A stretch of DNA of 60,950 bases, the filler included, from Platydemus manokwari (taxonomy: Eukaryota), in NCBI GenBank assembly GCA_037951405.1. It is 5 parts of 5 records of this genome, joined end to end, with 100 filler letters (N's around TTAATTAATTAA, not from the genome) between each part and the next. Parts side by side here need not be neighbours in the genome. Positions count along the whole stretch, not along the records: positions 37,119 to 49,764 come from JBBMOY010034458.1; 4 more parts are not named here. One strand, written 5' to 3'. The position numbers and the translations under genes were made by a program. The notes under the pieces were generated by a model. That model saw nothing but the letters and a program-made list of their open reading frames with translations, ran no database searches and was not told the DNA's origin. Shown piece by piece: positions 37,119 to 49,764 of the stretch. Every line of letters starts with the position of its first letter. Position 1 is the stretch's first letter.

Positions 37119-38102
37119 TAAGGTTAATCTTTTTTTATTATATTTTAGAATGAAGTATTAATAATATAATCAATAATTCTTATGTATTATTATTATGATT
37201 TATAATTTAAATGTCGATTCTTCTTTAATACATTTTAGAATGAATAAATTTCTAAAAGTGGTGCTAAACCATGGAATTGTGTTGTTCTAATTAGTTGGTA
37301 ACACGTGCAATACGAGTATGTCCTACTATTTTCATTGACAAAAACAATGTACTAATAACTTTTCAACAATTTATCCGACACTATGGAAGTTACATTTCGC
37401 GCGGAATCAAGGATCAAACAATTAAAACAACTCTATATGAATACACACACATATGTGTGTGCAAGACTTTTTTGTCCATTAATTTTTCCTTTGTAGTGCT
37501 TCTTAAGTTCGTACAATTAATTTTCAATGATGACAACTGTAATCAACGAAAGTTATGCAAAATTTACCGAATAATTATTAATACTAAAATAATTTTTGAA
37601 TCCATGTTACCAATATACTCTAGATTATACAAAAATTGCAGTTCCCTTTTAATGGTATCATGTGTTAAAAAGTTTAGGGTTTCAATTAAAATAGACTTTA
37701 ATTATACTGAAGAGCTGGAGTTATAAAAATTGAAAGATTGAAACGACTCTCATCTAACATTAAAATGTTTTTAATGAGGACGCTGTTTAACTCCAACAAA
37801 AGGCTATGGTAAAAGAATTTCCGAAAATAGAAACAGATTTTAAGGATTACGAACTTTAAAAGAATACCAAGGGCTCTAAAATTAGTACACCAACAAAAGT
37901 ACAAACATTATCGATGTAACTTTTATTTTGAAATACATAATTTATTTAATTAATTTAATTAAATTTGTGCTATTATGTTATCAAATTGGAGTATGACTTA
38001 CAGGAGCCGAGCTTATGCTCCACTGGTTTTCAAGTCTACTTTTAAGTACTGTTTTTATTACTAGTTTGTTTGAATTTGCCATTTTTGCTCATTGATAACC
38101 CT

Positions 38103-41100
38103 TCATTTACTTCCAAAGAAATCATTTAACAATTCTAATATCAAATAAAAATGAAAATAAAATAGGATTTAAATGTGTTAAGGTTTTCGTTGACGTTCTC
38201 TTTTAATATTTCTATAGCTTATTTTATAAATTTTCATTTAAAAGAATATTTACTATAAAAATTTGTCGATATAAAATTGGATTTATATTTTATTATAAAA
38301 ATTTATAAATTCACTTACGGCAATTTCGTTTTTTCTGACGAATTCTTGTTTTGCACGAACACGTTTTATTGTGTTTATATTTCTTCACTAGTTTTTCATT
38401 ATAAAATTTACCATTGCATTTCGATTTGTAAATTCGAATACCATATTTACAATCTATATGAAATACGATAAGAATTTATCATCACCATTTAAATGTACTT
38501 ACAAATTGGTTTTGATTTCCTTTTAACTACTTTAATGCATTTGTTGGCAACTTCATTCCATTTGTTATACAATACCATGGTAATAAAATGGCCTTTAACA
38601 GAATCACAGAATCGTTTTATTTGTGGTTTAGTTTTTGGACAACCACATCGTTTAAGAATAACTTTTTTTCTTTTAATACACTGACAGTTTTTTCGGATGA
38701 AAAATGTTCTGATAATTTTCCTTTTGTTTATGACAAGATTACACGGGTTCCACTTCGTTGATGGTTTATGACAATCTTAAGAATATGACAGAAATATACT
38801 TTATTAGATTAACCAATAAATTTATTTGGATTAGTTCAATATTTATATATTATTGATATCGGAAATTAATAAAACATACTAAAATAATCTATATTTTATT
38901 ATAATAAAATATTGATTTTTTATCAATGAAGAACATTTTTTTGATTATTATATATTTAGTTTGAATATATGTTGCACATCACCGGACAAGCTACTAACAA
39001 TGATTGACCAAATGGAAAATCATATTGTAGCAATTACTCCATATAAAAATGATAAATAATCGAGTACATTAGCAGTTTGTTAAGTTTGTCAAATGTTCTC
39101 ACTTCGATTTTTACTGTAAAGCACTCAGTAATATTTTATTGTCAATAATAATAATAATAACAGTTCTTTCGGAAACAAGTGATATACATTATTTTATCTT
39201 TGATAAATAGTATAATATCCACTTACAAACTGGTCTCTTTCTCAAGATTCGATTTTTTTCGCACTTTTTGCTGTTTCTGTTCAAAAAATATCCCTCACTG
39301 ATATGGAGCCATTGATTTAGAATTGCATTGCATTTCACGGATTTCTTTGGCATTTTGTGTTTGCAGTCTTAAAATTGTTTTATTAATTTATAAATGAAAA
39401 TAAAATTATCGATTTGTCTTACGGCAATCTCCTTGTTGAACGATTTTTTTTATTGGTACGCATTTACATTTTTGCAAAATATGAAAGATCTTATATTTTA
39501 TAAATCTTCCGGAATTTCGGAAACATTTCTGTCCAATTTTTACTCTTTTCGAACATTTTATTGGCGATATTATCAGTTTTGATTTTTTAACGCATTTATG
39601 TTTCCTCAATCGAAAATAGAATTTTCTCTTCACAAATGATCTTCCTTTACAAATTGGCTTCGTTATCCACGTTTTAGGACATTCTGAAATGAATTTTTTA
39701 AATAATTTTTCGAACGTGAAATTGATTTTCATACTGCATATGATTGATTTTGGTATTTTGTCTTTTTTGCACACACATCCGATTTGATAGGACTTTTCAA
39801 ATATTATCTTGCCTTTGTAACCATTTTTCGAACAGTATTTCTTTACTTGTCTGATGTATTTTGGGCAAACTGTTCGGTGATTATTAATTTTGTTAAGAAA
39901 ATTTCCATTGATACTTACAAACTTTTCTTTTGTGGACTTCTATTCTTTTAATGCATTTGCAACCTCTCAGGACTTCATAATGAACTTTTTTGATGATTGA
40001 TGAAATCGATTTGTCGCAGTACGTTTTTACAACCGATTTTTTACATTCTTTTTGAAAAAAAGACAATGTTAAATATATTCTGATATCATGTTTAATAACT
40101 TGTCGATAATTTATGAAAACGATTTGAAGTAATACGTTTAGAATTTTCGTTAGGAATTGCCGTTTTGAGAAAATAAATAAATAATAACTCTAATATTTTT
40201 TTATTAAATAAAGTAATTACTTATTGTTTCATAAATTAAATTAATTATATCGAAGTTTTAAATTAAAAATGTTATAATAATTTTTCAAAAAATTTATCAT
40301 ATATTAACTAATTCAGTATAAAATCTTCGTTTTTTGTTACAGAATTTAAAGTAACTTGATGAAAAACTCACTCCATGGACAGAATTTTTGCCTTTTTAGT
40401 GTTTTGCATTTGCATTTTGATACATATCCATGAATATTGGTTATCTCTTGTTTTCTGCCTTTAAGTTTGGGACCGAATATTTCTCTCATAAAACCAATTG
40501 GACAATTTACTTTTATATGAATCTCTTTATGCTCCAGTGAACATTTCCCATGAACGAGAACCTTTTTAGAAATAGTTGTTTCGATGTATTTTTCTCTGAT
40601 ACATTTTTGTGATTTTCTTATCGACTTTTTACAACCTTAATCAATCAATTGAAATTTATTTTAATAAAATATAAACAGAAAAAATTACAGCATTTCCTCC
40701 TTTCAGTTTTGTAAAGATTTTGTATACATTTTTTCAATTTCCCGTTCTGTTGAAATCGATAGACGAACCATTTTTTTATTTCATGACAATCGTTTGAGCA
40801 GTGCTGAGAATTCTTACATTTTTTGGGGCATGGAATGATATGGTGACGCTTATGGTGCTTACAATCACAAGGCTCCAAATGGATTTTTGTTCGTTCCACA
40901 CAACGACAACCTTTTCTAACAAGAGTAGTGAATATTATTTTTCTAAATTTGTTTTTGCTGTTTATAACGAAAAATGCACATGCTGTCACCCGTTTTACGT
41001 GAACTTTGCGGCATACTTGAAAAATAATTTTGAATAATTGTTTTGTAAATCAATATCACTAACAAATCGGGAATGCTCGTTTTAGCGTTTCTTTCTTGCA

Positions 41101-44100
41101 AGTGTGTTGTTTGGTTAAAGAGTATCTGATATACATTCGGACCAAGTGTCCTTTTCTTCTGTCGCAATATTTGACAACTCTTTGGTTTGGACATCCTTCA
41201 AATAAAATATTTATAACATTATCCAATGGTTAAGTAATTTTAAGACAATATTTATTAAATATTAATATCAACAATAATTGTTATTATTATTATTATTAAA
41301 ATCTAACTGCAACGTAATTTCTTTTGGAATATCTTTGTGATACATTTCCCATTAATTAATAAATGGGATAACTTCTTTTTGATTATGTAATCACCTATGC
41401 AGATAGATGTTGAAATTTGATCTTTGGGACAACCTAATTAAAATTTTAAAAAATCTCAATTTATTTTAATAAAAATCAATAATAATAAAAAATTTAAAAT
41501 ATAATAAAATTAATTACAGCATTTTCCTTCCGACGATTTCTTTACTGTTAGACGGCATTGGCATTGTTCCGGTTTCCATGTTTCCAGATATTTTGTACGT
41601 TTACAGGTAAGTCGATCGCATCGATAAATCAATTTATGTACTTTATTACAAACAACCGGTTTTACACTCTTTGTTACCACTTTCTTACACTTTTTTCTTC
41701 CTTTCATAATGTAACCGATTTGATAAAAAGCCCAATAATTATTTTCACAAACAGGTTTCTTTATTTGGATGTTTGGACATTCTGTAAAAAAAATTTTATA
41801 TCAAAACGGAAAAGTTGTGAAAATTAATTGTTTACTGCATAAGATTTCAACTTTTCTGGAAGAATAAGTGCATTTGCAATTGGAAGCAATCGATTTATGA
41901 AATGTGACAAATCGTGTTCTTGTTCTTTTATTGCACCGGGTTTTAGTTATCCAACTCCCTCGACACTCTGAAGTACAATCATATTTTTAATAGATTTTTT
42001 TATATTTTTAAAAATTTGTATTATATTTCAAATTTTTGTCATTATTATTACTATTATCTGAAATTCCTGATTTTATAATGAATTCACAAAAATAATTTGA
42101 TTCCTGAAAATCAATATTTTGAATGTAAATTTCCTTTGACATGCAAATTCGTCTGCAGACCGGAGATGAATATATTTAAAATAAGCGATAAAATATTAGA
42201 AATTCTATCACTTTCTAAGAATTTGATAATCAAATTCAGGTATATGGAATGGTTCAGTTATAATTACAAATATCACCCATCGGATATCGTGTTTTTAGTT
42301 AGAAAGTTGGTAAGAAATTGAATCGAATTGAAAATTATGAAAATTATTTATATATTAACTTTTCAATTTACCAAAATGATATGTTAGTTAATGGGCTTCT
42401 AATTGTAATTTTTGGGAATTTTAATAATATTATAATATCATATCATATTGACTTGTCTCACCGGCTTTACGTATCACTTTAGTGGAAGTCGTTTTCACGC
42501 ATTTAACACATTTGGAATGTCCGTATCGGTATGATGTTTTGGTTAACTTTGTTTCATCTACACATTTTGTGAATGAACCTCTTTCAGTTCTGCATTCTGT
42601 AAAATTGAAATCATTTATTTTTCTCATCTTAATTATCAAACATACGACATGGCTCTTTTATTTTGGTTGATGTACTTTTACATTTTTTTCGTTGACTTTT
42701 ATCTCTGAAATACGTTGTACTGATCGACCACCGGTAGCCTTTGCAAAAATTGCATTTCGTACGAGTTTTCAAAATATTTTTTGGACAAACTATCATTAAG
42801 TTATACAGTAGTTTTTAGATTTATAAATTAATGATATATACTTCCGCATTCTTTGTACGTTCTATCAACTAGTGCCATACATGATCCGTGTCTATTGAGC
42901 TTGTAACATGTTTTCTTGATTACCTTGTATTTAAATATTGGATGACAATCACTTTCAGAAGTCTGGCAGTCTGGGCATTCTTAATAAAATTATTTTAGAA
43001 AAAATAGTTGAAAATCGTTAATATCTGAGAATTGATTATTTTATAAAAAATCTCCTCACTACAAGATTCAGGATAACAAGTGAGTCTACACATTTGTTTG
43101 TAAAAGTCCAGCCCACATTTTCCTTTAGCTTTTACTTTGTGACAAACTCTACTGCTAACTTGATCCTCACATGTTGCAGAACAAAATTTGCAAGTCACTC
43201 GACAAAATTCTTGCATCAGTTTTGGGAACTTTTTGCATCTTCCATCGTTTAACCATCTCAGACATCTTGTTTTCGAGAATCGATCAATGCACACTAAATG
43301 ATTATAGAATTATTTATGATCTAAATGACTATTTTAGTTTTCACTTTTTTCTAAACATTTGCAATCTTTCGGTGCAACACATCGGTTACCGTCGAGAACG
43401 AATCCACGTTTGCAATCACAACCATTACGATGAGGAAGTTTGAAGCACTTTTTACTTGTCTCGAAGAAGTGGTTCTCGCAGGTTTTTGGGCAAGGATTCA
43501 TTGTTGAGACAAATTGTTTGTTTTTGCCACATTTCATAGCTAAAATTAATCATAATTAATTCTCTGAAAATAACTTACACCGTTCCATTTCTGTTTCTAT
43601 ATTTAGATAATTTCTAGCTGAAATGTTTTTTTTTAATAATTTTGTCTTCAAAATCAATAATGAATAAAATATAACTAAATAATCTTATTATTTTGAAACT
43701 AAATTTCACTATTGATGATATTTGTTTAAATATTCCACAATCAGAAGTTTTCAAATTAAAGAACGAACATAAAATAATTAAAATTACAAATACCATAGTT
43801 GGCTAAAACTATCCAATACAGTACTTTGTTTAGCATTTTATTTTTTGTTTTCGTTGTAAATTGTTATTTTAATTTTAATAAACTAGTAATAATTAGAAAG
43901 TATTTTAAAGCTTAATTTTGTTTTTCGAATTATTTGTAAAATCTGAAATTCAAATCACAGTGGGATAATTACTTTTCAATTATGAATCTTCTATATAAAT
44001 GAATTTTCTCGAGTATTTTATAAAACGTTTCTGAAAAATCAACTTTAAAACGTCTTGATGTTTTTATGAAAAATTTTATTTGGAATTTTTAAAGCAAAAC

Positions 44101-46001
44101 GAGAGTTCAGAATTTTTGAGTCTTTTGATAATGTGATATAAATATATTTTTGATATTTTCATTGCTATTTCAGTTTCTTTTAAATGTAATTTTATTTAAA
44201 TGCTGTTTTAAATAAAAATATTAGAGTTATTTTGTCTTTCATTGAATTTAAGCATGTTGGTTATTAAATTGCATTTGATTTATTAAAATTAAGCAAAAAT
44301 ATTATAAAAATATTTAATATTTATAATAACATGAGTTTACAAACACGATGTCTATCGTTATTATTATACTAATATTTAGTATTGGTATATAAAAACCATC
44401 ATTTTTGATTAGCAAAAAATTTTCAAATTTCTATTATATCTTATTAAAATATTTAATAAATTTAGTATTTCCGAACAAAAATATTATACTAGTTTTTAAC
44501 TTACGACAAAAATTAGCTGTCCTCCAATGAATGAAAATTTCTTTTTCTGAACAAGCTTCACCCGCCATTGAATGAACTTTACACGCAGCTTGTTGCATCT
44601 TCTTTCGGTTTGGCCATTCCGTACACACATCCTTAATACATCCTCTGTAGAAATGAAAAGCCATTGTTTCACATTTGAGAAAGCCACTATGGATAGAACC
44701 GGCTAATCGACCGCAGTAAGTTTCACCAATTTTTCTCGAATATTGTCTTAAACACGTGTTTCTATTTTTATATCCCGATAAAGTTTGGCATCGTTTTCCA
44801 CCAGTGTATGCTTTGTTTAATTTATCATCGATTGGATTCCCATTACAATTTCCACACAGACCCTTAAATTTATGACCTTTGAACACTCCAGCGCTTACAT
44901 AACCTCCACCATGACCATTGTAAGCTATAGCTAAATTGCATTTTGGTATTACGATTTGTAGATATTCTCCGCTATAGAATACTCGCAAGTGTTTTTCTGA
45001 ATGTGGAACGAGTGCAGATTTGCCATTAATCTGCGAAAATAAATCTATAAATCATTATCACTACGTTTATAATAATTTACGTATAATTGTTTCCCATAAG
45101 ACAGTAAGTAACGATTTTCTTTGAAATAAAGCATTTGTCCGTTAAATTTTCCGTGTTCGGTGATTGCAAACAATTTGAATGAGCATTCTGATTTACTGTT
45201 GACCCATTTGGATAATAACATACTGCATTTTCCTTCACTACTAGCTAATAGACGTCTACGATCATATGTGAGTATATTGCCTACTCCATAATGATAACAT
45301 TGACAAGCTGCAATATATACATCAAAATTTAACAATAAAAAATTATCATTTGTCTTTACCATATTTTGGTGTCCATTTCGCAGGTTTTTCACAGATTTCT
45401 TCATGTATCTTTCGTTTCGATTTGCATTGTTTTCCTATTCTTACGAAGAATATAGTGGTTACCTTTCTTTCTCCTTTTTTGCATTTGTGACGATTTGTTT
45501 GACTTTTGGGACAAGCTAAAACATTACAGAATTAATTATCAATGTTGTAAAAGTTTAATATTATTACGGCATTTCAAAGTTTGAACCATTTGTTTGTGAA
45601 TACATTCACATTTTCTAATGATAAATTTTGTTGTGATTTTTTTCGATAATCCCTTGACACATTTTGTTATTTTCGACAATGTTCTTGGACAGACTGAAAT
45701 AAAAAGTGAAATATTTAATTGAAATATACATTGATTAAATTTACTTATTTTGATCGGAATTTTCTTGATAATCTTGTGACATTTTCCATTATCGTGTCTG
45801 AATTCAATAATGATTTTCAATTTTGCAAAATCTTTGCAGATCAGTTTAGTTGTTGGCTTTGGACATTTGTTTCTAAATCATTATAATCAGCAATTTAAGT
45901 AAAAAATTCCTTCATTACCTCAGTTCAGCTTCATGAATGCACGCTATTAATATGAATGTACATAACATTACCCAGCTCCATCCTGGGTTGCTTTTGAACA
46001 T
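38103..46001 (-). CDS. Secreted cationic Cys-rich protein, 24 exons, ~1480 aa: signal peptide, 3 Cys modules, VWD, C8, TIL, 2 ShK, ~20 Cys modules
   Basis: Exons (minus): 46001-45919, 45872-45745, 45693-45568, 45515-45360, 45307-45081, 45030-44505, 43539-43345, 43293-43060, 42979-42842, 42789-42646, 42596-42462, 41967-41836, 41781-41518, 41433-41308, 41195-41064, 41015-40689, 40635-40372, 40047-39919, 39869-39735, 39683-39423, 39367-39227, 38775-38503, 38453-38319, 38134-38103. All GT-AG and frame-consistent (4443 nt). Signal peptide MFKSNPGWSWVMLCTFILIACIHEAEL; VWD end GLCGNCNGNPIDD; C8 ..CIKDVC..HWRTANFC; TIL CPKTC..GCDCKRGFVLDGNRCV; ShK CIDRF..FCRVTCKFC and CEDQV..MCRLTC..C. The short last exon is the least certain. 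Confidence 0.9.
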
Positions 46002-46034
46002 TTTGAAATTATTCTTTTGTCTCTGTATGGACTA

Positions 46035-46040
46035 TTTATA
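46035..46040 (-). promoter_or_regulatory. Candidate TATA box of the VWD-ShK gene
   Basis: CCATATAAATAG on the minus strand, ~35 nt upstream of the ATG at 46001. The AT-rich background lowers specificity. Confidence 0.4.
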
Positions 46041-47989
46041 TGGTTTATAGAGTCTCCAGGACAATTAATCATTCGAGAATATGAAAATGAGGGTCAAAAT
46101 TGTAATTAATTGCTGTTATTATTTACAATTCATGTATTCAGTTTCTAGATTTCGGTTCGAATATTATTTATGGGTTTCAAATAATATTAAAAATTTTTAC
46201 TTGAATTGTATTGTTATTGTTAAATTCATGATGAAAAAGAAATTTATTTTAATAAAAATTAGATTGTTACTTTGTAAGGTAGCCACATACTAATTAATGG
46301 AAAGTACAAAAGTATTGCACTAAATGTTACCTATTATTTATTGTTTTATCCACATGTTATTTGATTTTATTTTAGATTTGTAATTGTCATACAAAAAGTT
46401 CTTAGCATTTATTTCTAAGAAAAATATTTACGATTAACTGGATATCTGTAATAGAAAGTATTATATATTCGACTAGAACACTGTAAATTATCGGTCTCCT
46501 TATCTGCTTATTTTCTATTAGTACTTGGAGTTCACAGTTCCAAAGATCTCGTGAAAGGAGTCGCTTAATTGATATTTTGAACCATCGTCTTAATTAATAA
46601 GCCTATTAAATTCAGTTTCAAATAGCTACTTTGAAATTTTTTAAATAAAATTGTATGTGTAAAAATTTTAAAGGTTATATAAAAAATCATAAAATAGTTT
46701 GAAATCCACTGCTCTTGTACACACGAACAATTACCTGCTGTAACAATCTCGGTCTGGTGTTTATATTATAATATTCTGGGTGATGATAGTTTTAATTGTG
46801 TGATGTATTTAATTATTTAAATATATGGGGAACATAAAGAATAATTTATATTTGAAATATCTATAATCTTAATGATATTAAAACCTATTTTACCAAGTTT
46901 TAAAATTATCTAATTTTTAAGGTGATTTCATTGTTTATATTAATCAATGTTTATATATTAAGAATCAAAAAATCATATATTTAACTTCCAAAGATATCAT
47001 TACAAAGTACACTGTTATTAAAGAATTCTTTAATATAAATATGGTAATTTTCTGAGTTTAATGGGGAGAGTTCATTCGTTGTTTATCTTTAAAATAATTT
47101 TAAAGATAATTAATGTATAAAAATTAAGTTTATTAAAAATTAATGTTCATCAACATTATTTTCTCGGCTGATAATGTTTGTGATTATTATCCTGCCTAAA
47201 TTTTACAATGCAATAGTTAATTTTCGAAAAAATTTAACAAAAATTTATGAGACCCATTTAATTCGTGGAGATTGTTATCTGTAGACACTGATGTATGAAT
47301 AGCATCAGGAATCGTAATGAAATAATGATAAAAATTTATTAAAAATCTTTTTGAAATCATTAAATATAATTATGAACTTTCGACAAAGAAATACTAACTA
47401 TCTCTCGTTTTTAATTGGTTTTTTTCGAATGACTTGTCTGACTTCAATAAAGAACAAAGACTTTTGTGCAGAGAAACAAACAAAATGTTTGAAGCAATTG
47501 AGCGCACAGTTCTAAAGTAAAACCAAAATAAAGACAATTTAGTTATAAATTATGATTATTTTACTAGAGTTGAACGAAAACTACAAGCCAAATTTATGAA
47601 GCCAAAGCGAAATAAGATTAGAATTGGTGCTATTTTATTTCAGATACTGTTTTATATTTATCAATATTGACATTACCATGCCCCTATTAAAATCCAAATT
47701 AAATACAATTTATAAAGAAAAATTACATTCATTTCGTATGATGCAAAGCAAATTTTTATTAATAGTTATAATCAATGAACCAAGTGCCATAGTAGATACA
47801 TACTAAAGAATTTTCGAAAAATTTATAATACTTTATCATTATGTATGTACTTATGTTATTGCTGATTTTATTTTTATGAAATTATTGGTACTAAATTCGG
47901 GATAACCAAATAATTACTGACACCAAAAGTCGAAGATTATATGCCGTTATTTCTATTACGTGTCCTAATCTGTACGACTCTAAAATTCA

Positions 47990-48450
47990 ATACAATGTCT
48001 CAAAAAAGCAACCAAAACTTGACTTCCAACTGGCAGTCGGTCATCTTTACATCCGTATTTGTACCCGAGATCTATGCGCATGTTTGTATTATGTTTATAT
48101 CATATTTTGATTTGATCTTTAATTTTCATGTTTATATTGGACTTGACGGTTTTTATATATGCGGGATTGGTCAATCCTTACATGTGCGTTGTTGTGTGGC
48201 TATGTCTATTTTTCAAAGGATCGTTTTTTTAATAAACCAGCTGTGATTGATTGATTGCCATGGCTCTATGGTTGTGTAGGTATGAAAGTGCTCAAAGTGC
48301 TAAACATGGATTCCAAGGTGCAAATTCGATTTTTCTTTTGCAAGATTTCTTCTCTACTCAACGATATGTTACATCGATCAAAATTGAAGTTCTGTTTTCA
48401 ATCTGCTTTGGATTGTATTAATTGAATTTTAATCGAACTTTTGAGCTCTA
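47990..48450 (-). mobile_element. Possible decayed LTR-retrotransposon integrase fragment
   Basis: Minus-strand fragments FHTYTTIEPWQSI (like LxPxPxxPWxxI) and DRLPVGSQVLV (like FxVGDxVLV). Heavily interrupted. Confidence 0.25.
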
Positions 48451-48589
48451 GTCTGACAGCAATGATGCTTTAAAATTTATTTTGTATTTATGGATTATTT
48501 TTGGGCTTATTGATAATTTTAGGCATAGTATATTAATTTCAGATTTTGGGTTATTTGATATATATTGTCAGTTAATTTGTTTTCAGCAG

Positions 48590-49285
48590 CTATATTAAAA
48601 TATAGCTATTCTCAAAGATCTCTTCAGTCTGTGCTTAGACACAAACAATGCCTATGAATGGCCGAAATCTAATTGTCGACAATATTTTTGCAGCGCAGTG
48701 TATTTCTACATCAATCAAAAGAGTTACAGGAACCAAGTAAATAACCCAAAAAAGTGTCAACACACATAGATTCAATAAGCACATGTGCCCTCATCCAATC
48801 AGATTTGTTTTAATATTAATCTATATTTAGAGGCTAAATATCGACATGCACATACCTATAGATGGCAGCAAGCTCAAATGAGAGATGCGAGAAAAATTTC
48901 AAGTAGACCGATCTACGAACTGATTCAGCAAATGAAAGATGAAGATCCGTGACAGTCGATAGGTCTATCAAAGAAGTTGAGTTCAATGAATAACTCCCAG
49001 TCTTTTGGACTGTAACTCGCATGCTAAACTTATATTTGTGTGATTTTTAGTAATTAGTCTTTTTGATTACCTTCTATTCTGTTTTTGACTTTCTGGTGCT
49101 TATTCCGTCTTGTGTAATTAACCATTGTGAGCTGTAAAGAGGTTTGCTTGTAGCTGTTGAGATTACTATTGTAATATTTTGGGTAATATAGTTTTCAGAT
49201 ATAATTGTTGATTGATAAGCCTAACAAGATTATAGAAGACAATAATCTATTTTATGAATTTTATTATTGGAATTTAAAGGGTTAA
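48590..49285 (+). mobile_element. piggyBac deletion derivative
   Basis: NGRNLIVDNIF (~48657-48690; piggyBac GRNxxxDNxF catalytic motif), a Cys-rich tail remnant NKHMCPH, and a right end AAAGGG-TTAA at ~49276-49285. Confidence 0.5.
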
Positions 49286-49764
49286 TGCTGACTGTGAAAT
49301 TTATTAATTTTTCATTTTCTTTCACTCAAGTTTATTGCTATAAGGGAATAATTGTATTTGATATTTTAACACAGTTGCTGTGTGAGTATCTATAGGGATT
49401 TCTAAAATATATGCTATATTTCTGTTAATTATTTGGATTAATTTATTAAATGATATTTATTCCGAATTTTTATTATTATTTATATTTAATATAAATATCA
49501 CAAATATAATATTTATCGACCATCTTGCTGAAAAGATCATTGTGTGTTATTTTTCTCAATGCGCATTGAATAATATTTTGAATTCATCTACCAAGTTTTA
49601 CATTTCTTCCAATATAAAAGTTCTAGTCTGAATCCCATTCACCTAGAGGTTAATTCAAAACTAAAATCTTAAAATCGAAAGCAATATATTTACCAGGAAG
49701 TGGTTTTAGAAGACGTAGTAATCCCCTGGAAGAACAACAATCCGGATACTATCTTTCAACAAGA

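Follow-up and report, generated by a model that had tools for sequence, protein, structure and literature searches.

A conserved flatworm gene predicted to join a VWD-C8-TIL core to an array of cationic disulfide modules, and its possible part in a cohesive gland secretion

In a 60,950-nucleotide stretch of DNA from the flatworm Platydemus manokwari (assembly GCA_037951405.1; hereafter the window, meaning the whole of this stretch of five joined parts), one part contains open-frame fragments that are rich in cysteine and lysine and lie without exception on the minus strand. This part comes from record JBBMOY010034458.1, occupies window positions 37119-49764 and has a G+C content (GC) of ~25%. 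Its fragments raise the question of whether they are the exons of a single gene and, if so, what kind of protein that gene would make. Here we provide evidence that they belong to an intact protein-coding gene that, as sequence comparison indicates, is constrained in at least two species, and whose predicted product consists of a signal-like segment, three modules, the domains VWD, C8 and TIL, two ShK domains and 20 further modules. These modules are an unannotated domain family and not low-complexity sequence.

The gene model was obtained by chaining the fragments with a splice-aware script and then correcting the result by hand against the sequence. Automatic splice-chained models were rejected because they either skipped real exon sequence (part of VWD, and the junction of exons 15 and 16) or placed micro-exons into long introns. 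The curated model runs from an ATG at 46001 to a TGA at 38313-38311 and has 23 exons. An earlier note on this DNA had counted 24 GT-AG exons and had extended the feature to 38103, so its exon count is revised and its endpoint withdrawn, the coding sequence ending at 38311; its description of a single uninterrupted spliced frame of ~1480 amino acids stands, given that the spliced frame comprises 1475 codons with no internal stop. All 22 introns are GT-AG, with lengths of 46-112 nt in 18, mostly 46-55 nt, and 324-965 nt in four, and 20 of the 22 are in phase 1, such that most exons are symmetric 1-1 cassettes. The weakest donor of the model is that of exon 11 (GTCAAT). Exons 7-23 were defined by one continuous frame, phase-1 junctions, splice consensus, Pfam matches and module periodicity. 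We take the protein chain to stop at this TGA with moderate confidence; a candidate for an extra 3' exon (38087..37981) was rejected, as it has no cysteine and no likeness to the modules.

Evidence for the reality of the gene comes from a second species. A word search with exon 6 recovered one protein (P0001, 79% identical), whose source is a metagenome contig in ENA (L001; 1869 bp, 29% GC). This contig covers exons 1-6, has GT and AG at 10 of 10 homologous splice sites and aligns to the exons without gaps, with exon nucleotide identities of 67-77%; the exception is exon 1, which at 54% is no better than the introns (52-64%, with indels). When spliced likewise, L001 yields an open frame and a protein that is 70% identical to that of the window and retains all cysteines. 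The proportion of nonsynonymous differences (pN) is 0.18 against a saturated synonymous proportion (pS) of 0.72, and the corresponding rate ratio (dN/dS) is ~0.09 overall, against 0.14 when the three N-terminal modules are taken by themselves. The retained splice sites, together with a dN/dS of ~0.1, argue that the gene is real and under constraint in at least two species. No further orthologues came from a word search with exon 22 or from scanning JGI metagenome contigs twice.

The first four exons encode the N-terminal segment and the three leading modules. Exon 1 (45919..46001, 83 nt; like all features below, on the minus strand) holds the ATG and a signal-peptide-like segment of amino acids 1-26 (46001..45924), the only hydrophobic window of the protein; its ATG and donor are aligned in L001, where only 33% of the residues of the segment are identical, yet the segment is hydrophobic there too. 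Module 1, of type A (the types are defined below), is encoded by exon 2 (45745..45872, 128 nt), which keeps its splice sites and frame in L001 at 77% nucleotide identity without gaps. It is followed by module 2, of type B with its CxC, in exon 3 (45568..45693, 126 nt) and by module 3 in exon 4 (45360..45515, 156 nt), both exons being phase 1-1 and conserved in L001.

The core follows directly, and for it, as for the modules, Pfam and PDB sequence searches covered single exons or parts of exons. The N-terminal half of VWD lies in exon 5 (45081..45307, 227 nt), which was curated by hand and is kept in L001; its beginning can be aligned with that of the VWD in a Macrostomum lignano protein (P0007), with GVGN here against GDPH in P0007. 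Exon 6 (44505..45030, 526 nt) encodes the C-terminal half of VWD (to ~44818, with GLCGNCNGNPIDD) and C8 (44715..44506). Pfam matched it to VWD (PF00094; E-value 2.1e-6, 28.6 bits against a cut-off of 22.9) and, once the VWD part was removed, its second half to C8 (PF08742; 1.9e-6, 28.5 bits against a cut-off of 23.7), which was also found in the orthologue P0001 at 3e-7. The MUC2 chain 7qcn_A matches the same exon over VWD and C8 (E 0.001). TIL (PF01826; 6.1e-9, full-length at 1-55/55) occupies 43531..43361 in exon 7 (43345..43539, 195 nt, phase 1-1), the next exon after C8, to which it is joined in phase 1. Finally, exon 8 (43060..43293, 234 nt, phase 1-1) matches ShK (PF01549; 3.2e-8) in two stretches, 43291..43181 and ~43171..43061, each with six cysteines. 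All four domain types named in the earlier note were therefore recovered by Pfam, and no match to C-type lectin or EGF was obtained in the exons scanned.

Some details of this core can be recorded alongside. The VWD motif GLCGN.NG reads GLCGNCNG (44840-44860, exon 6), creating a CxxC (CGNC) that is kept in L001, and the position of the GDPH autocleavage motif, GVGN here, is occupied by GAGN in the L001 orthologue. Intron 6 (43540-44504) separates C8 from TIL precisely and showed no exon-like frame; no other intron is as long (965 nt), and no other stretch is as rich in AT (20-22% GC).

The presence of two canonical six-cysteine ShK domains invites the reading of the protein as a venom or toxin precursor whose ShK domains would block potassium channels. 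We consider this extremely improbable, given that ShK accounts for 5% of a structural-looking protein of 1475 residues and has no dibasic processing sites around it, and that ShK is frequent among secreted enzymes and matrix proteins that are not toxins (PMC6453901).

The predicted protein has a mass of ~173 kDa, an isoelectric point (pI) of 9.96 and a net charge of ~+280, and is composed of 17.8% Lys, 6.9% Arg, 5.6% Asp plus Glu, 9.6% Cys, 3.8% Tyr and 4.8% Gly. These values agree with the earlier description of a chain rich in lysine and arginine (25% together) and poor in acidic residues, and two absences described at the same time were likewise borne out. There is no mucin tract, as Ser, Thr and Pro reach at most 34% in any 50 residues and 14% overall, and there is no transmembrane segment: hydrophobic 19-residue windows occur at one place, residues 4-28 (hydrophobic core, residues 11-22), which is the signal-like segment, and the rest of the 1475 residues contains no further window that could serve as a membrane anchor. 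One N-glycosylation sequon and no furin-type RX[KR]R site were found. The mature chain carries 139 cysteines, an odd number, and at least one would thus be free for an intermolecular bond. Taken together with the N-terminal segment, the sequence indicates that the protein is probably secreted.

A secreted, cysteine-rich and cationic protein might instead serve reproduction, as egg-capsule or cement material or as a zonadhesin-like protein of semen or gamete adhesion; zonadhesin is itself a VWD-C8-TIL protein, and flatworms own cement and shell glands. However, flatworm eggshell precursors are quinone-tanned and rich in Tyr and Gly, unlike the present composition, and we consider a reproductive role rather unlikely.

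The modules number 23, as the earlier note had estimated, with three before VWD and 20 after the ShK pair; their measured span of 40-59 residues is wider than the ~43-47 it had given. They share three near-invariant cysteines and a CP start at a mean identity of ~22%, and about 28% of their residues are Lys or Arg. Two types can be distinguished, A with three cysteines (C-x9-C-x18..22-C-x12) and B with five (C-x9-C-x16..18-C-x-C-x10-C), and these mostly alternate, which defines a unit of 86-90 residues with eight cysteines, hereafter the A-B unit. Exons 13, 17 and 20 each encode exactly one such unit, and units are linked by C-x-C-P with a phase-1 intron in the x codon. No tandem repeats were detected at the DNA level in the exons, so the module duplications are old. 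Pfam searches of the exons and of each of the 23 modules at E 10 gave no module match, including to VWC, PTN_MK, TSP_1 and, the last module included, CTCK; PDB sequence searches with two module profiles (A1 and A4, the latter from the A-B units) gave none either.

The 20 modules after the ShK pair are distributed over exons 9-23. Module alignment identifies module 4, a variant with six cysteines, in exon 9 (42842..42979, 138 nt), and module 5 in exon 10 (42646..42789, 144 nt) is assigned to type B by the M. lignano model described below. Module 6 lies in exon 11 (42453..42596, 144 nt) ahead of the weak donor, and is followed by module 7 (type B, from both module alignment and M. lignano model) in exon 12 (41836..41967, 132 nt); the intron between them carries an AT-rich 21-nt tandem repeat at 41981-42045, detected with TRF (Tandem Repeats Finder). 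Unit alignment places modules 8-9, a full A-B unit, in exon 13 (41518..41781, 264 nt), and module alignment places module 10 in exon 14 (41308..41433, 126 nt). Exon 15 (41064..41195, 132 nt), curated by hand and with the donor T/GTTAGT, encodes module 11 of type A, and exon 16 (40689..41015, 327 nt) encodes module 12 of type B together with the irregular module 13. This last module (40780-40866) is rich in His and Cys, with HHKRHH and extra cysteines (CPKKCKNSQHCSNDC), and scores as neither A nor B; it may have decayed, or it may be an insert that binds metal.

Modules 14-15 form the A-B unit of exon 17 (40372..40635, 264 nt; unit alignment), and two modules of type B follow, module 16 in exon 18 (39919..40047, 129 nt; M. 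lignano model) and module 17 in exon 19 (39735..39869, 135 nt). Intron 19 (39684-39734) is 51 nt long, in frame and free of stops, so its retention would add 17 residues without breaking the protein; exons 19 and 20 can be read as a single open reading frame of 177 residues, and because of this their separation rests on splice consensus and module boundaries. Exon 20 (39423..39683, 261 nt) encodes modules 18-19, the A-B unit that was placed in the unit alignment and used for folding. The array is completed by module 20 (type A) in exon 21 (39227..39367, 141 nt), modules 21 (B) and 22 (A) in exon 22 (38503..38775, 273 nt), and module 23 (B) in exon 23 (38311..38453, 143 nt), which ends in RNCRK, its TGA (38313..38311) lying inside the donor C/GTAAGTGA.

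To which proteins are these modules related? A profile of all 23 was compared with 1.84 billion representative proteins and gave a single match at E <= 0.001, the M. lignano protein A0A1I8HCF7 (E 1e-6), which was matched in nine stretches, or 10 in a local re-scan. A word search from this protein returned only more M. lignano proteins, and the relatives comprise A0A1I8HCF7, A0A1I8IWZ4, A0A1I8HBH7, A0A1I8JCT9 and A0A1I8JP74, which carry automatic UniRef names (VWFA, VWFC or VWFD domain-containing). Pfam gave no match on their module part, and the five accessions were not mentioned in the literature searched. In two of the M. lignano proteins (P0005 and P0006) a signal peptide comes first and a long A-B array after it, and in P0007 the modules lead into the beginning of a VWD that has GDPH. 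As gene models, the M. lignano entries (P0002-P0007) are fragments with out-of-frame tails, which limits comparison beyond the VWD start; they are probably pieces of one or a few large genes in need of re-annotation. A look-up of the M. lignano proteins in the contig collection returned no entry.

Comparison at the level of the A-B unit supports common descent. In an alignment of 13 units from both species (A4), six cysteines (C1, C11, C43, C72, C74 and C86) are invariant and two more (C30 and C53) are present in at least 90%, with the consensus C-x9-C-x18-C-x12 followed by C-x9-C-x18-CxC-x10-C over ~86 residues. Aligning units of the window alone with units of Macrostomum alone in hhalign gave a probability of 89.5% and an E-value of 2e-6 over 81 columns. 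Moreover, when scored against models built from the A and B halves of the Macrostomum units, 17 of the 20 typed window modules matched their own type, including 11 of 11 of type B, so the split between A and B predates the split of the two species. On these alignments, the M. lignano proteins are true homologues of the window modules. They share with them the A-B unit with its eight cysteines, the C-x-C-P junction, a high content of Lys and Arg, a signal peptide and a link to VWD; they differ in being only ~23% identical, in being Arg-rich where the window protein is Lys-rich, in having the array N-terminal to VWD, and in keeping GDPH.

AlphaFold modelling of the A-B unit of modules 18-19 gave a mean predicted local distance difference test score (pLDDT) of 75.8 with three window sequences, and a pLDDT of 93.5 with a predicted template modelling score (pTM) of 0.59 when the 13-row alignment of both species was used. 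The resulting model has six strands, with three long antiparallel strands per module, and confidently depicts the unit as two disulfide-stapled three-stranded antiparallel beta-sheets. Searches with this predicted shape gave no clear relative: Foldseek against the PDB returned nothing at E <= 0.001 and nothing better than E 0.4, with pleiotrophin (2n6f) a weak match at rank 2 (E 0.49) and midkine-b at rank 15, and VIA-align against 48,161 chains gave a best Z of 4.6, to generic three-stranded meanders. In a second VIA comparison one module could be superposed on pleiotrophin residues 15-56 with a root-mean-square deviation of 1.8 A over 39 residues (Z 3.7), a score tied with unrelated beta-meanders. 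The ESM Atlas, searched by features and by shape, gave no usable or meaningful match.

This weak shape match also bears on the idea that the protein regulates signalling in the extracellular matrix, either in the manner of BMPER/crossveinless-2 or kielin/chordin-like protein or as a multivalent, glycosaminoglycan-bound factor resembling midkine. The layout is in its favour, since BMPER/crossveinless-2 and kielin/chordin-like protein likewise combine an array of cysteine-rich repeats with a single VWD-C8-TIL, as is the 'VWFC domain-containing' name of one M. lignano relative. Their repeats, however, are VWC domains, and they are not polycationic; none of the modules here matches VWC, PTN_MK or TSP_1, or any solved sequence, the pleiotrophin superposition scores no better than those on unrelated folds, and the GDPH cleavage motif that crossveinless-2 uses is replaced by GVGN. 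We consider such a regulator quite improbable. As for pleiotrophin itself, it consists of two basic, disulfide-stapled, TSR-like beta-sheet domains, binds heparin and chondroitin sulfate, and is bactericidal (PMC9363672). Pleiotrophin and midkine resemble the A-B unit in being tandems of small, very basic, disulfide-stapled antiparallel beta-sheet domains; they differ in that no sequence or Pfam match links them, pleiotrophin has 10 cysteines per domain pair against eight here, and the shape match is not significant. The predicted likeness suggests a picture of how a module might bind glycosaminoglycans.

The bactericidal activity of these heparin-binding proteins (PMC9363672), the nearest shapes to the A-B unit, also lends some weight to an antimicrobial or defensive polycation, held in gland granules or mucus, whose beads would disrupt or agglutinate microbial surfaces while the D assembly anchored it in a mucus gel. 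The net charge of ~+280 and pI of ~10 would suit such a function. Moreover, the ShK and TIL folds are known from defence-related secreted proteins. Known cationic antimicrobials are small, however, whereas a multimerising chain of 173 kDa looks structural and lacks furin-type sites from which peptides could be freed, and we regard this explanation as unlikely.

Two further groups of known proteins can be compared with the architecture as a whole. Gel-forming mucins and von Willebrand factor (with MUC2, PDB 7qcn, as the example) share VWD, C8 and TIL in canonical order and the GLCGN.NG..DD motif; in contrast to them, the present protein has a single D assembly with GVGN for GDPH and an extra cysteine (CGNC), and has no Pro/Thr/Ser domain, VWC or C-terminal cystine knot. 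The adhesive proteins of flatworms are the second group. In Mlig-ap1, the cohesive protein of the M. lignano duo-gland system, C-type lectin, VWD-C8-TIL and 17 EGF domains make up the core, which is flanked by more than 3600 residues rich in Lys and Arg (PMC6410801) that have been described as Gly-Arg-Lys low complexity (PMC9229212, PMC8621496, PMC6745481). In flatworm glue the cationic regions are proposed to give cohesion and charge-based release (PMC6410801, PMC8621496, PMC9229212), and VWD-C8-TIL is recurrent in aquatic adhesive proteins (PMC8621496). Together with Mile-ap1/ap3 and Tmed-ap1/ap3, Mlig-ap1 shares with the window protein a secreted flatworm VWD-C8-TIL core with very cationic flanks; where those proteins have a C-type lectin, 17-19 EGF domains and Gly-Arg-Lys flanks, this one has folded disulfide modules and two ShK domains. 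Orthology to Mlig-ap1 was accordingly rejected on architecture, there being no lectin, EGF array or Gly-Arg-Lys tract here, and ShK being present.

The likeness to Mlig-ap1 is therefore one of analogy, a common design in which a polymerising D assembly is combined with a large positive charge. The earlier note had pointed to Mlig-ap1/ap2; the flatworm connection is upheld, in that the relatives of the modules are M. lignano proteins, and the comparison with Mlig-ap1/ap2 themselves is one of analogy and not of kinship. Its author had not recognised the combined architecture, and we too found no named counterpart in Pfam, the PDB or the papers searched, the only relatives being the uncharacterised M. 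lignano proteins. More broadly, VWD-C8-TIL together with cationic regions recurs in the adhesives of sea stars, sea urchins and limpets, in which the cationic parts are disordered low-complexity tracts.

Given these comparisons, we propose, at a confidence somewhat better than even, that the protein is an electrostatic cross-linker of a gland secretion, acting through multimerisation of the D assembly and a polyanion-binding chain of beads. VWD-C8-TIL makes disulfide-linked multimers in von Willebrand factor and gel-forming mucins, and by analogy with that family the single unit here would assemble into dimers or multimers, joined by disulfides, within the secretory pathway. To judge from its charge and shape, the chain of rigid cationic beads would then bind polyanions multivalently, for example glycans of mucus or glycocalyx that carry sulfate or carboxyl groups, an anionic secretion acting as partner, or charged surfaces. 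In this way the protein would be a cohesive component of an extracellular gland secretion, whether adhesive, mucus or coat, and we make no choice among the three.

Several points weigh against this proposal. Its multimerisation step draws on knowledge of the family, and the protein has one D assembly and no C-terminal cystine knot; its binding step draws on charge and shape. The signal peptide was called by eye and from hydropathy, and its best cleavage site has His at position -3. A search of sequencing runs for the locus gave one DNA-like match and no RNA run. At the 3' end, the TGA lies within a consensus donor (C/GTAAGT), and since the last codons overlap it, a further 3' exon may exist and the end of the gene is uncertain. 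Finally, the comparative support from L001 covers exons 1-6, and exons 7-23 are predicted. This last point, together with the four long introns (324-965 nt) and the weak exon 11 donor, would also fit a model that wrongly fuses two adjacent genes (exons 1-8 and 9-23, for instance), or a 3' array that is in part a decaying pseudogene. We consider such an error very improbable: the junctions keep phase, one frame stays open over 1475 codons in DNA whose composition makes stops frequent, ahead of exon 9 there is no second start codon followed by a signal peptide, modules occur on both sides of the core, and M. lignano also joins arrays to VWD.

The surroundings of the gene contribute few further features. 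A possible TATA box (TATAAATA; 46033..46040) lies 32 nt upstream of the ATG and a possible polyadenylation signal (AATAAA; 38289..38294) lies 17 nt past the stop; both were read from the sequence and are weak evidence, the former because the genome is ~25% GC and the latter in AT-rich DNA. Rfam gave no match over the whole piece (37119-49764), Pfam gave none on the flanking open reading frames, and the upstream flank (46050-49764) contains no notable repeats. Within this flank, a patch at 48100-49100 stands out by its GC of 31-36%, against 21-28% around it; neither Pfam nor Rfam matched it, and it is free of notable repeats.

Among reversible animal glues, that of flatworms is understood best, and VWD-C8-TIL proteins with cationic regions lie at its centre; the disordered cationic low-complexity tracts of known glues are hard to assemble, express and study. 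In the protein described here, the charge is carried instead by a small, confidently modelled disulfide unit of 86 residues that is conserved between two distant species. More tentatively, and with a probability that we place well short of even, the A-B unit may be a folded, polycationic disulfide domain not described before, perhaps distantly related to glycan-binding domains of the TSR or midkine type, that defines a flatworm-lineage class of secreted "charged bead-chain" proteins cohering glue or mucus through multivalent polyanion binding. Such proteins would match, in structured form, what the disordered Gly-Arg-Lys regions are in Mlig-ap1. The adhesive proteins of M. lignano have been characterised by in situ hybridisation and RNA interference (PMC6410801), and since homologues of the modules are present in this species, their function is directly testable. 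Should the protein turn out to be an ordinary constituent of matrix or mucus, one more unannotated domain family will still have been catalogued; if the proposal is true, the A-B unit, which is amenable to recombinant production, would offer a defined building block for charge-based underwater cohesion.

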